Of a DNA stretch of 64,000 bases, positions 10,609-16,844 are shown piece after piece. The DNA lies in assembly GCA_039096225.1 (NCBI GenBank), contig JBBPEB010000026.1, positions 310,001 through 374,000 on the forward strand, read 5' to 3'. Source of the DNA: Blastocystis sp. Blastoise. Its lineage: Eukaryota > Protista > Bigyra: Opalinata. How positions within the stretch are numbered: the first letter of the stretch is position 1; every line of letters begins with the position of its first letter. The notes under the pieces are model-generated. The model searched no databases. It had not been told where the DNA came from and worked only from the letters and a program-made list of their open reading frames with translations. A program made the position numbers and the translations under genes.

Positions 10609-11979
10609 ATGAAGAATTTTTTTGTTCTTGTTATTGTAATTGCTTTATGTGTAGCTGCCCATCCTCATGGATTGAAAGAACCTCGTAAGGATTTCTCTTA
10701 TGAAAAACAATATCAACGTTTTACAACTCCTTACTCTTCTGAGCGTAGATCAAATTCTCCTATGATTTATGTTGTTGATTTTGGTGCTGATCCAACTGGT
10801 ATGAAAGACTCATCTGAAGCTTTCCAAGCTGCTATTGATGAAGCTATGAAACGTGGTTATGGTACTATGGCTGATGGTATTCATGATTGTGGTGGTGTCT
10901 CTATTGACTTAGAAGGAGGTCTTTATCTTTTTGATAAACCTGTTTATTTCCCTCAATTCCATGGTAACTGGAAAATGACTCGTGGTACTGTTCGTGCTTC
11001 TGATAATTTCCCTTTAGATAAACATATCATTATTGTTGGTGAGAATGAATGTGGAAATAAACAAGGTTCTTGTAATCAACATATAGATTTCTCATTTATG
11101 ACTTTTGAATCTAATCATCATTCTGCTGGTGGTCTTCAAATCTTTAGAACTATGGGTGGTAATGTAGGTCCTAATATTATGTTCCATGGATATCTTACTT
11201 CTGGTTTAGATCTTGAAGGTGGTCATGAAGTTATGGTACATCAAGGATGGTTTGGTGAAAATTGGTATGAAGGTGGTAGTCACAATATTACGGATCCTCT
11301 TGGTGTTGGTGTATTAGTTAATGGTAATGATCACTTTTTAAATGATGTTATTTTCTTCTGGTCTGGAACTGCTGTTGTTATTAATGGTGGTGCTACTATG
11401 ATGAGAGGTGTACATTCTTGGAGTGAAAATATTGCTTTTATTATTAATGCTGAAGCTACTCGTCTTGAGAATTGTTATATAGATTTTAATACTATGATTA
11501 TTAATAGTTTTGCTCATAATCTTATTACTGATATGTTTTTCTATCATGGTAAAATTATTTTACAACCTATTGGTACTCAAAATATTAATGGCTTAGTGAT
11601 ATCAAGATCTATATTTGATGGTCCAGGTATAGATACTATTAATTTAGATCTTTCTAAAGGTTCTTTTGGTACTATAAGAGATTGTTATATTACAGATACT
11701 CTTGCTTCTCATACTGGTTATAATGTTCGTCAAACTCAATTAAAGAAATCAATTCATTTTGAAAATACAAAACATGTTGAATATGATTTTAGTAAACACC
11801 TTGTGTTTGGTCAAATTCGTGATGCTAGTTATTCTGTTATACTTGAAAATAATGTATTTACTAGATATACTATGAGACCTATTGAAAATGGTAGTAAAGT
11901 TATAGTTGAATTTGAAGATGCTGTTTCTGGTACTGTAAACTTTGTTGTTGATGAAAGTGAATATACACATCAATATTAA
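10609..11979 (+). CDS. Secreted pectin-lyase-fold (Pectate_lyase_3 / QRT3-like polygalacturonase-like) protein, intronless
   Basis: Signal peptide MKNFFVLVIVIALCVAA. Motifs VVDFGADPTGMKDSSEAFQAAI, GGVSIDLEGGLY, GGHE and GNDHFLNDV resemble plant QRT3. Confidence 0.8.
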   Translation: MKNFFVLVIVIALCVAAHPHGLKEPRKDFSYEKQYQRFTTPYSSERRSNSPMIYVVDFGADPTGMKDSSEAFQAAIDEAMKRGYGTMADGIHDCGGVSIDLEGGLYLFDKPVYFPQFHGNWKMTRGTVRASDNFPLDKHIIIVGENECGNKQGSCNQHIDFSFMTFESNHHSAGGLQIFRTMGGNVGPNIMFHGYLTSGLDLEGGHEVMVHQGWFGENWYEGGSHNITDPLGVGVLVNGNDHFLNDVIFFWSGTAVVINGGATMMRGVHSWSENIAFIINAEATRLENCYIDFNTMIINSFAHNLITDMFFYHGKIILQPIGTQNINGLVISRSIFDGPGIDTINLDLSKGSFGTIRDCYITDTLASHTGYNVRQTQLKKSIHFENTKHVEYDFSKHLVFGQIRDASYSVILENNVFTRYTMRPIENGSKVIVEFEDAVSGTVNFVVDESEYTHQY

Positions 11980-12154: not shown

Positions 12155-13481
12155 TTAATGAAGTGGAGGAATACCTATATATTTATTTATATATTTATTT
12201 ATATATTTATATATATTTATATATATATTTATTTATATATTTATTTATATATTTATTTATATATTTATTTATATATTTATTTATATTTTTATATATATAT
12301 TTATATATATACCTTTAGCAGCAAGAACACGATAACGATCTTTTAATTGGATATTTGTACGGTTAATGAGGATTCTTCCGTACTGAGGATCTTGTTTAAT
12401 ATCAATCCATTTCGATGGATTCCCGCGGTAATGAAGTTCTCCCGCTAATAAGGCTTGGTCTTCTATATATATATATATATATATATATATGGTTAAATAT
12501 ATGATTCTATATATACCTTGAATTGTCCATGGATTTCTTGTTTGAGAATTAGCCGGTTGAATAAATCCTGGCTCTATATACATAGTTATATATAGTTATA
12601 TATATAGTTATATATAATTATATATATACGTATAATATCAACAGGACGGGGAAGAGAATTAGGAACAGTAGTAGGAAGAGACTCTATATATATATTAATA
12701 GTATTATTACAAAAATAAATATATATAAATAATAATAAAAATAGCAATAATTATAATAATATATATAATAATATATATACGTCTAAATAATATTTCTTCC
12801 ATAAGTTTCATCATATAATAATCACCAGAAAGAGGAATAGAAGAAGAAGAAGAAGACATCTATATATATATAATAGTAATAATATATATTAAAGAAGAAA
12901 ATATTTAAATAGAATACAAATATACATCTTTCTTCAAATTATTTAGTGCTATTTGAATATTATTATTCGTTTGGCGGCAAATAAATGTGATTTGATCCCT
13001 CCAATTGGCGCCATAACTAGCTTCCATTACACTATTTGGACACTATATATATATAATACATATAATATATATATATAATATTAATATAAAATATATATAA
13101 TATATATAATATTAATATAAAATATATAAAATATTATATAAATATATAAAATATTTAACATATTTAACATAAAATATATTATATATATAACATATAATAT
13201 AGTATATAATAATATTTACTTCTTTAAGGTATTTTTCACGAATATCTTTTCGATCAATAGAAACACCATCTAATAATAATCCTTCGTCATTCCCGCGGTT
13301 ATTCGAAGATATTTGAGGGAGGGAAAATAATTTTTGATTTGAAGAAAGTGGAGAATTGCTATATATATATATTATTATATATTATTATATATTATTATAT
13401 ATTATTATTATTATTATTATTATTAATAATATATATATATATACGAATGGATTACATTTGATGATACTGGATTTAAATCTA

Positions 13482-13515
<34 letters not shown>

Positions 13516-14159
13516 GTTATTTATATACCCTTTTCTTCATCATTATTTATGTCAGATAATCGCGGTTTTTTGTTATCTAATGTTTCTTCTTCTGAATATT
13601 TTCGTTTTGTAGAAGTAGTTTCTATATATATATTATTATTTCTATTATATAAATACTATGTATATATTGATTATATATATATTATTATATATATATATAT
13701 ATATATACCATGTTTAGAGTGTCCACCACTGATAAACTGTTTAAATCGATTTAATAATGACGGTCTCCCCGTGGGAATTACTTCTTTTGGTTTTGAATTA
13801 TTACCATCAGGTAGAGAATCATTAAACATTTCGTTTAAAATTTGTTCTTTTTTCATGGGAGAAGGTGCATTTTGACTGGGTTGAATAGTATTTCCCACGG
13901 GAGATGGTTTAAGAAGAGAACTATATAATTGAACTTGTTTTTCACCACAAACTAATTGACATCTCTCTCTATATTTCTATATATATAATTATATATATAA
14001 TTATATATATTTCTATATATTATATTATATATATTTCTATATATTATATTATATTATATATATATATATATAATTATATATATAATTATATACTTCTATT
14101 TTAACAATAGTAGCTCCAAGTTTATTTATATATCGTTTAATCTCCTCAACAGACATAGA

Positions 14160-14236
<77 letters not shown>

Positions 14237-14358
14237 TGTATTTTTTCTTCATCTAAAGATACAGATATAGTTTCACATTCTATATATATATATATAGTTA
14301 TATATATATATAATTATATATATACTTGTAGTTGATTCTTTTTTTGTATCCTATATAT

Positions 14359-14397
<39 letters not shown>

Positions 14398-16540
14398 ATT
14401 ATCAATTTGTGATTTCCCGCGGAAAGTTTTCAATTTATAAAAACTATCCGGATTCTTCCCTTGAGAAATATCAATACAACGGTTCACGTGATGCTCACGT
14501 GTCATAACAGAAAAAGAACTTAAGTCTTTTGAGCATATAGGACAAATTGATGTAGTATTATTGCTATTATTAGTATTACTATTATTCCCGTGGTTATCTT
14601 GTGAATCAATACATTGGTTAACATGAATTAATTTTTCTTGTTGTGACATTCCTTCCAAATTCTTTGAGCAGATACAACATACTTCTATAAATATATATAT
14701 ATATAAAGTATATAATAATATCTATATTATTTATATATTGATATATATACCATTGTCTTCAGAAAGAATACTGAGATTAATCGCGGGAATTTGTGTATCT
14801 GGAGTCTGATGAGGAGATAACGTAGATAATGATAATAATCCTGAATTGGCAGCTCTGGGTATGTTATTTGAGGGAGTATTTGAAGGAATATTCGCGGGAA
14901 TACTTGAAGGAATACTTGAAGAAATATTTGAAGGAATATTTGAAGAAATATTTGAAGGAATATTCGCGGGAATACTTGAAGGAATACTTGAAGGAATATT
15001 TGAAGGAATATTTGAAGGAATACTTGAAGGAATAGAAGTGTTTGGAAGAGTAGAAGAAGAAGAAGGAATAAAAGGAATTGGAGAGTTTTTCGTCAAATAA
15101 TTTCCTTGTGAATAATCAGTTGTGCTTGATACATTTTGTTTATTGACTATACCTCCAAAAGGAGTTTTATTATTTTTATTATTATTATTATTATTATTAT
15201 TTGGATAATAATAATTACTATTATTTATGTTATTATTATAATTATTCATATTATTATTATTATTATTGTTATTATTTTGATAATTATTCATATTATTATA
15301 AATATTAATACCGTTTGTATTATTATTATTTGTGTTATTCTTATTTGCCGTAGTGATATTACTATGAATATTCTTATAATTATTACTATTATTCTTATTA
15401 TTATTACTAACATTATCATCATTTTTAAATAAATTATTAAGTCGCTCCTGTAATTGTTGTGCAGCAATAACTGGATCTTCATACAATTCGGGGGATTTCC
15501 CGTGGGAATCAGGCTGTTTAGAAGAGGATTTAGGAAGAGAAGAAGAAGCTAACGATGAAGTAGTAGTAGAATAATTGTTATTACTTATATTATTATTACT
15601 TATATTATTATTACTTATATTATTATTATTACTAATATTATTATTACTAATATTATTATTATTACCAATATTATTATTACTTATATTATTATTATTCATA
15701 TTATTATTACCTATATTATTATTATGATTATTATTATTACCTATATTATTATTCATATTATTATTATTCATGACCTTATTATTATTAGTTAGAGCTGTGT
15801 TTATAGATAGGGAAGATATTCCGCGTGTGGATGGAGTTATTCCTTGTCGAGGAGGTGATTGTAAAGTAGATGGATTTGTAGGTTGTGTATATAAAGACAC
15901 TCGTTTTGATTTATTCACTAAGGGAGTACCAGATAAACTACATCGAACTTTTGAAGGACTAACTATAAGAATATAATAATAAATAATAGTTTTATATTAT
16001 ATATTAAAATTGTTAAAGATATTTAAAAGTTAAAATAACTTACATAATGAGTTTTCTTGAACAAATGTACTTGGATTATTATTTTTTACATTATTTTCAA
16101 AAGATGAAAACAGCATCACTGTAGATCCAACAGTTATCATATCATGAATAGAAATAGGATTTGGTTTTAACTTAGCTAAACGAACACCATTGACTAATGT
16201 TCCATTTGTACTACCAATATCACTCAATAAAACTATTGGAGGATTCTTTGAATCATCGATAGTTATTCTAGCATGTTCAGAACTTGCTTCTTTATCTTTA
16301 TGTAAACCAATATCATCTACAATTGATTGAATCAACATAAATATATATTTTATATATACCTGTTGACTTGAATCTTCCGATATTACAATATAATTTTGGT
16401 TTTGAAAGTCTTACTGTTTTCTTCTTTCCTTTATAAGGTCCTTCAAGAAAAACAAAGACGAGTACATAGTCGCTTCTATAATATATTGATAAATAAATAA
16501 TAAAGAGTTCATAAAGAGCTTACTTTACTTCTGTTGACAT
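12155..16540 (-). CDS. Multi-exon protein: FHA domain, Asn/Ser-rich linker, two UBZ4-type zinc fingers, C-terminal telobox (TRF-like) Myb domain
   Basis: All GT-AG junctions splice in frame from ATG 16540 to TAA 12155. FHA: IGR...SSEHARI...[11 protein letters not shown]4: CCICSKNL...HVNQC and CPICSKDL...[10 protein letters not shown]. Myb: [13 protein letters not shown]...W...[11 protein letters not shown]. Confidence 0.8.
14870..15035 (-). repeat. Coding 12-bp tandem repeat ([12 protein letters not shown])
   Basis: About 13 units of TGAAGGAATA(C/T)T on the + strand inside the large exon. Confidence 0.9.
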
Positions 16541-16622
16541 TTTAAAACAATTTACAAAAAATAACTAGAAAGAATAATAAAAAATATTTGAAAATATATA
16601 TTTTTAAAATTTTGTCTTTTAT

Positions 16623-16844
16623 ATGATACGGAATAATCCTACAAAAATAGATTTAACTGATGAGGACATAGATGTATATTTATGGTTGTCTTAATTTTGT
16701 TTTATATATGCTTGATAGAGATTAGATTCCATTTTACCTCCTTTAGAATCAACAGTAGATGACGTCAAACGGACACCAGAAGAGGAGAAAAAGCGTAGAG
16801 AGGATATTATTGGTTTAACAAAACAGCGAATGAATAATAAATGA
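16623..16844 (+). CDS. CDC26: APC/C subunit CDC26 (APC12), about 58 aa, one intron at 16674-16718
   Basis: N-terminus MIRNNPTKIDLTDEDID matches the CDC26 signature MLRRxPTxxxLxxxDI; ends ...RREDIIGL. Absent from the ORF track. Confidence 0.7.

Follow-up and report, generated by a model that had tools for sequence, protein, structure and literature searches.

Blastocystis is a very common gut eukaryote, and we know of no description of its telomere proteins. Here, we describe a predicted gene in a 64,000-nucleotide stretch of the genome of Blastocystis sp. Blastoise (contig JBBPEB010000026.1, positions 310,001 to 374,000 of the forward strand; the whole stretch is called the window in the following, and positions are counted from its first nucleotide). 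The gene model joins an FHA domain, two zinc fingers with a CCHC ligand pattern and a C-terminal Myb-like sequence in one protein, from which we tentatively propose a DNA-tethered adaptor that would read phosphorylation and ubiquitin marks. The organism is the Russian tortoise isolate Rus-B, also named Blastoise, with a published genome of 33.3 Mb in 33 scaffolds and 23.1% GC (PMC10690189); the assembly analyzed here comprises 34 contigs and 33.34 Mb. A dictyostelid origin, to which the low GC content of 22% and the Asn-rich proteins of the window could point, was rejected because no Dicty_CAR was found, the telomeric repeat is TTAGGG and the DNA was identified as Blastocystis. The features on which the proposal draws are as follows.

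12155 to 16540, minus strand: whole gene with 18 exons, 17 introns (43-177 nt each) and a coding sequence of 1017 codons followed by the stop codon TAA at 12157-12155.
16126 to 16475, minus strand: FHA domain, exons 2 and 3 with intron 2 inside; GR in exon 2, SxxH and NG in exon 3.
14602 to 14682, minus strand: zinc finger 1, C-x2-C-x14-H-x3-C with the helix end HVNQCID; exon 5.
14455 to 14553, minus strand: zinc finger 2, CPIC...HVNRCID with the spacing of finger 1 and Pro-Ile in the beta-loop; exon 5.
12314 to 12535, minus strand: single Myb/SANT-like repeat, first Trp at the end of exon 16 and the rest in exon 17, intron 16 inside.
12329 to 12361, minus strand: telobox-like recognition helix of this repeat, a variant of LKDKWR in which R replaces K and Y replaces W.

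As stated in the first-pass annotation of this locus, the gene reads as one continuous spliced frame: the predicted exons sum to 3054 nt without a single internal stop codon, and every intron runs from GT to AG. Exons and introns also differ strongly in GC content (23-41% versus 1-19%; 29% in the coding sequence and 22% in the window), and GTA(T/A)A...(TA)n TAG is common to 16 of the 17 introns, the majority of which open with GTATATAT and close with ATATATATATAG. At this base composition about 9% of random codons would be stops, so that open exons as long as 89, 91, 96, and 404 codons lie well outside what chance would produce. The weakest parts of the predicted model are the tiny exons 6, 7, and 11, which were kept because the reading frame requires them. 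Both limits of the gene are fixed by its neighbors, the 5' limit because a divergent CDC26 gene starts at 16623 and the 3' limit because a convergent intronless gene ends at 11979.

All searches and structure predictions queried single exons, and domains split by introns (the start of the FHA domain, the first Trp of the Myb-like repeat and a possible CUE element) were thus covered in part. Even so, exon 3 alone matches the FHA family PF00498 over residues 5-63 (E 5.8e-11; 43.1 bits versus a cut-off of 20.7). Gly-Arg, Ser-x-x-His, and Asn-Gly contact phosphothreonine in characterized FHA domains, and all of these residues are there, as NIGR in exon 2 and as SSEH and STNGT in exon 3. The earlier claim of an N-terminal FHA domain is confirmed, and we regard the assignment, at the level of sequence, as solid. 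The PNK/aprataxin-type family FHA_2 (PF17913) matches none of the exons. HMMER searches with the FHA exon against 1.84 billion representative sequences recovered only generic FHA domains at 35-46% identity, mostly in bacterial multi-FHA proteins, and the ten long matches that were checked are bacterial-type multi-FHA transporters and similar proteins. Among metagenome contigs, the exon found only FHA matches of about 40% identity, on contigs from environmental samples, which are as generic as the bacterial ones.

Two CCHC zinc fingers in exon 5

The two fingers have 13 residues in common and both close with H-V-N-x-C-I-D. UBZ4 modules are compact beta-beta-alpha folds with CCHC zinc ligands (PMC4267625), and this ligand pattern occurs twice in exon 5. 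The first-pass annotation had called both fingers UBZ4-type; a CCHC pattern is present, whereas the UBZ label finds no matching model, as the fingers stay below the curated thresholds of all Pfam UBZ families. The second finger and the end of the Myb helix, as quoted there, are both present letter for letter in the translation.

An AlphaFold2 model of the finger exon places a helix after the CxxC knuckle, the predicted local distance difference test (pLDDT) being about 82 in finger 1 and 70 in finger 2; DSSP assigns isolated strand residues only. Foldseek found nothing in the PDB with the finger exon, VIA-align returned no Z score above 3.1, and a superposition of the MOZ CCHC finger was not significant (Z 2.5; root-mean-square deviation 2.3 A over 33 residues). 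Sequence searches of the PDB with the fingers or with a two-finger profile likewise gave chance-level matches only, the best relevant one being the first UBZ of Pol kappa (residues 623-648; E 1.7). Of the ten family sets that a shape search with the model brought up, two belong to SNM1, two to Pol kappa and one to a ZUFSP-type protease, at low template modeling scores of 0.36-0.46.

A reference is encoded in the genome itself. The finger of its own Pol kappa shows 36% identity, and Cys, Ile, Cys, Lys, Leu, His, and Cys are the positions that it has in common with both fingers. This Pol kappa (IMS-family) gene lies on the plus strand of contig 2 and encodes a single CCHC UBZ-type finger (L128:4542-4631) of the form CPIC...H-I-D-E-C directly before the stop codon, following a 774-codon open frame that is mostly rich in Asn, Ser, Thr, and Pro; it served as the in-genome reference. 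The nearest protein language-model clusters of the fingers carry the annotation PF18439 (zf_UBZ), at 0.91 (171 shared features) and 0.87. Finally, the ubiquitin encoded in the same genome (L120:1495-1722) was used for a co-fold with finger 2 and zinc, with contacts agreeing between runs to at least 94% and a partner pLDDT of at least 81. The interface score ipSAE was 0.48 versus 0.00 for the best control, which counts as weak support: the mark was reached in 51 of 78 cases among solved complexes and in 2 of 108 among mismatched pairs, but only 5 of those 78 complexes scored at or below 0.60. Four independent lines concur, albeit weakly, in suggesting that the fingers are UBZ-like.

A third ubiquitin-binding element may be present in the same protein.

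12926 to 13042, minus strand: C-terminal half of what may be a CUE/UBA-like bundle of ubiquitin-binding helices (PF02845); exon 13.

The CUE family PF02845 matches exon 13 alone below its threshold (E 0.041; 14 bits versus a cut-off of 21.1) and over profile positions 17-38 only, which correspond to the last two helices; the first half would span the junction of exons 12 and 13.

The C-terminal Myb-like repeat

A Myb pattern occupies the last approximately 57 residues before a short tail, with one Trp in exon 16, a second in exon 17 and Tyr as the third aromatic residue. Helix 3 reads LKDRYRV (12346-12326). It retains Lys-Asp and the last Arg, positions that we take to correspond to DNA-contacting residues of human TRF1. 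The telobox motif, LKDKWR(T/N), opens helix 3 (PMC4924339, PMC10887745), and helix 3 of this repeat matches it with the two substitutions listed above. A hidden Markov model made from 20 other Myb repeats encoded in this genome aligns W...RT..Q.K.R with helices 2 and 3 and scores exon 17 at 7.5 bits, a value matched by 4 of 2000 shuffled sequences. The nearest language-model (ESM) clusters of exon 17 are all Myb families (0.83), which we treat as a lead only. Exon 17 has a net charge of +4 (nine Lys/Arg versus five Asp/Glu). Translation across intron 16, whose frame is open, brought no better Pfam match, and searches with exon 17 found no paralogue in the genome and no relative among metagenome contigs.

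The genome offers a target for a telobox-type protein. An assembly scan found TTAGGG arrays in telomeric orientation at contig ends, in agreement with the CCCTAA template predicted for the telomerase RNA of Blastocystis (PMC8287931). Within the window TTAGGG is scarce (9 occurrences versus 18 expected), and promoter telo-boxes are accordingly not evident there. No TRFH domain, the dimerization domain of vertebrate and fungal TRFs only, was detected in the exons or in the genome, a weak negative, as the control genomes were silent too; in the Pfam searches, none of the exons matched a nuclease, BTB, SAP, or further enzyme family. This agrees with the earlier statement that neither TRFH nor nuclease is visible.

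A second telobox-like single-Myb gene is located on the minus strand of contig 14 (174600-176600). Its Myb exon matches PF00249 with an E value of 2.7e-7; the next exon, with helix 3, reads ...AVREKWRNM and is followed by an FYRN domain (E 2.7e-16). The notion that the gene in the window encodes the only telobox Myb of the genome was dropped for this reason.

A possible DNA-tethered adaptor

Two further features complete the picture of the encoded protein.

14751 to 15962, minus strand: exon 4 linker, 404 codons, Asn/Ser/Pro-rich and of low complexity, without a match to any Pfam family.
13560 to 13607, minus strand: bipartite basic cluster KRK...KKPR, putative nuclear localization signal read from the translation; exon 10.

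It is tempting to propose that this single nuclear gene gives rise to an adaptor, i.e., a mostly disordered protein of about 1017 residues without recognizable catalytic domain. Briefly, the C-terminal single Myb repeat would tether the adaptor to duplex DNA, the two CCHC UBZ-type fingers, possibly together with the CUE-like bundle, would bind ubiquitin on chromatin or on repair proteins, and the N-terminal FHA domain would capture a phosphothreonine-bearing partner, with long Asn/Ser/Pro-rich linkers separating the three. The basic cluster in exon 10 would be compatible with nuclear import. In this way, signaling of DNA damage or replication stress that depends on phosphorylation and ubiquitin might be brought to the DNA that the adaptor occupies. 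Given the telobox-type recognition helix, TTAGGG repeats would be the likeliest target, and the TTAGGG telomeres of this genome would provide such a Myb with a natural one. Telomere specificity is the most attractive reading of the sequence and a plausible one. Since it derives from one helix, however, we hold the general, DNA-tethered adaptor only tentatively, at somewhat short of even confidence, and consider a strict binder of telomeric duplex decidedly unlikely. The latter would be a telomere factor that binds duplex TTAGGG and brings its own readers of phosphothreonine and ubiquitin, in a Blastocystis genome without detectable TRFH-type shelterin protein; one polypeptide would then do the job of mammalian TRF2 and of the SLX4- or MDC1/RNF8-type adaptors recruited to it. 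Of the telomere damage and repair scaffold proposed in the first-pass annotation, the union of three module types in one plausible gene stands, whereas the telomeric part, to which the LKDRYR helix by itself points, is kept as a hypothesis.

Several observations weigh against this proposal. The C-terminal repeat retains the helix motif described earlier but does not earn the Myb label by Pfam, as the best match of exon 17 alone, PF13921 (Myb_DNA-bind_6), is below threshold (E 0.12), and a genome-wide scan with PF00249 recovered 57 Myb repeats, none of which is the repeat of exon 17. An AlphaFold2 model of exon 17 alone was unusable (pLDDT 54). No TRF, TRFL, or Taz1 chain was recovered when exon 17 was compared with the PDB by phmmer, a low-power search with a 49-residue query that needs two gaps; its two matches, both to Aureochrome1, are due to chance. 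The third aromatic residue is Tyr instead of Trp, and the N-terminal arm ahead of the first Trp is only weakly basic. As the genome holds another telobox-like Myb on contig 14, the one described here need not be the telomere binder. In the fingers, the residues expected to touch ubiquitin are incomplete. The UBZ domains of RAD18 and WRNIP1 contact ubiquitin through Pro-Val in the beta-loop and, in the helix, Asp37 (PMC4370504); both fingers have Asn at the position of the WRNIP1 Asp37, finger 1 has Cys-Ile in place of the loop Pro, and Pro followed by an aliphatic residue is found in finger 2 alone, which leaves neither finger with the full set of contact residues. Lastly, no orthologue was recovered, although the queries were single exons, the searches were length-filtered and records of the genome itself were masked, for which reasons such blanks carry little weight.

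The strongest alternative, which we nevertheless deem less probable than not by a clear measure, is a sequence-specific regulator of transcription or chromatin, in which the telobox Myb would occupy dispersed sites in promoters or gene bodies, as in plant TRB proteins and PcMYB1, and the FHA domain and fingers would mediate regulated protein contacts. FHA domains are also found in transcription factors, and the telobox-like Myb of contig 14 is joined to FYRN, a chromatin-type domain. Telobox-type Mybs of plants work as transcription factors (PMC4924339). The depletion, instead of enrichment, of TTAGGG in the window and the resemblance of the fingers to the UBZ type of repair proteins argue in the other direction.

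The repeat could also be a SANT-type module that contacts histones, in which case the protein would read modified chromatin, i.e., phosphorylation, ubiquitin and histone tails, without sequence specificity. The weak scores in the Myb models, the replaced third Trp and the lack of a strongly basic arm ahead of the first Trp would suit this explanation, but exon 17 is net positive and in LKDRYR the telobox residues Lys, Asp, and Arg are retained; we consider it improbable.

Little credence can likewise be given to a model of two merged genes, with an FHA-finger gene that ends after exon 13 and a small Myb gene that starts at the ATG of exon 14 (12859). Exon 14 does open exactly with ATG, and retention of intron 13 would lead to a stop after six codons. 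Yet the gap from this stop to the ATG would be only about 45 nt, compared with median intergenic distances of 645-719 bp in tortoise isolates (PMC10690189), intron 13 matches the other introns in its signature (GTATAT...ATATATATAG) and its low GC content, and a cluster of a rare exonic motif, described below, spans both halves.

Least probable is a scaffold of the SLX4 kind that would serve structure-specific nucleases and has acquired a telomere-binding domain of its own: the tandem CCHC fingers do recall SLX4 and the role of its UBZ (PMC4370504), but the Slx4 CCD (PF09494) was found neither in the gene nor in the genome (control genomes were silent too), GIY-YIG/SLX1 is missing from a genome scan whose control was positive in 12 of 14 genomes, the exons match neither BTB nor SAP, and SLX4 has no FHA domain.

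The adaptor reading is also informed by comparison with characterized proteins. SLX4 (FANCP) shares tandem CCHC ubiquitin-binding fingers and acts at mammalian telomeres, but reaches them via TRF2, lacks a Myb and is equipped with MLR, BTB, SAP, and the SLX1-binding CCD, none of which was found here. The fingers align equally well with that of the genome's own Pol kappa, and the analogy to SLX4 drawn in the first-pass annotation finds no support. More generally, they share with the UBZ4 fingers of Pol kappa, RAD18, WRNIP1, and SNM1A the CCHC ligands, a predicted knuckle followed by a helix and, in finger 2, the Pro-Ile beta-loop; the end H-I-D-E-C of the in-genome Pol kappa finger resembles H-V-N-x-C. 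They differ in the substitutions at the contact positions named above, and ubiquitin binding is predicted weakly. With TRF1/TRF2 and plant TRB/TRFL proteins, the protein described here shares a single C-terminal Myb with an LKD(K/R)-aromatic-R helix, in an organism with TTAGGG telomeres, but it has no detected TRFH, has Tyr for the third Trp, shows no significant match to the solved domains and combines its Myb with FHA and UBZ modules.

Among known proteins, the layout comes closest to that of APLF (aprataxin- and PNK-like factor), which consists of an N-terminal FHA domain, a long disordered linker, tandem fingers that read a damage-related modification and a C terminus that contacts chromatin, without an enzyme domain. 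Finger type and C-terminal module differ, however: APLF has C2H2 PBZ fingers that read poly(ADP-ribose), a PNK-type FHA domain and an acidic histone-binding tail, whereas CCHC fingers, an FHA domain without a PF17913 match and a Myb were found here.

No description of an FHA-UBZ-Myb chain was found in the literature searched, and the exon-only, length-filtered searches with masked own-genome records did not return any database protein of this architecture. The finger exon shares no words with any database protein, and a search with exon 4 among proteins of 222-705 aa returned low-complexity noise and no homologue. We know of no earlier case of a telobox-type DNA-binding domain fused to FHA and UBZ modules. 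On sequence grounds, this appears to be a new domain architecture made from known modules, and as such of moderate interest. If the gene model and the binding activities hold, it would be the first known fusion of a telobox to both main reader modules of DNA-damage signaling and a concrete candidate for the telomere or chromatin biology of Blastocystis; if the Myb is not telomeric, it would be a lineage-specific adaptor built from ordinary modules.

A GC-rich exonic motif and neighboring genes

The coding exons of the gene are further marked by a short repeated motif.

12420 to 15508, both strands: CRYGGGAA/TTCCCRYG, eleven copies in exons 4, 5, 9, 12, and 17 and in all three codon phases.

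Counting both CRYGGGAA and its complement, the window contains 22 copies (from 7398 to 62275) versus 1.2 expected, and half of these copies (11 of 22) lie in exons of this gene, where their GC-rich codons are conspicuous in a coding sequence of 29% GC. Genome-wide, the palindrome TTCCCGCGGGAA is found 113 times versus 0 in the control, and ATTCCCGCG 1140 times versus 1. The occurrence in coding exons, in every phase and in both orientations, points to a constraint at the level of DNA. The motif presumably resembles an E2F site. Clusters are also found in COPB2-like, acyl-CoA-synthetase-like, Rad17/RFC-like, and Pol kappa genes, and a copy of the TTCCCGCGGGAA palindrome lies inside the second telobox-like Myb gene (contig 14:175406). 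The idea that the motif marks a repair regulon was dropped because of the clusters in the COPB2-like and acyl-CoA-synthetase-like genes.

On its 5' side, the gene is separated from a divergently transcribed neighbor by a short spacer.

16541 to 16622, no strand: spacer of 82 bp between the start codons of the FHA gene and the divergent CDC26 gene.

The CDC26 gene, for a subunit of the anaphase-promoting complex, starts with an ATG at 16623 on the plus strand; its first 19 residues, encoded in the first exon (16623-16691), match PF10471 (E 4e-4). In human Blastocystis subtypes, introns have a uniform length of 30 nt (PMC10690189), quite different from those of the FHA gene (43-177 nt).

The convergent neighbor on the 3' side (10609-11979) is intronless and encodes a secreted protein of the pectate-lyase superfamily (PF12708). 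At least six loci of this family are found in the genome (contigs 1, 3, 6, 10, and 14 and the window). A paralogue 79% identical to the window gene is encoded on contig 14 at 100% identity; compared with this paralogue, two loci match over the full length at 100% and 80% identity, another shows 43% identity, and three more match in part only. The size of the family fits the expansion of plant-fiber enzymes in tortoise isolates (PMC10690189).

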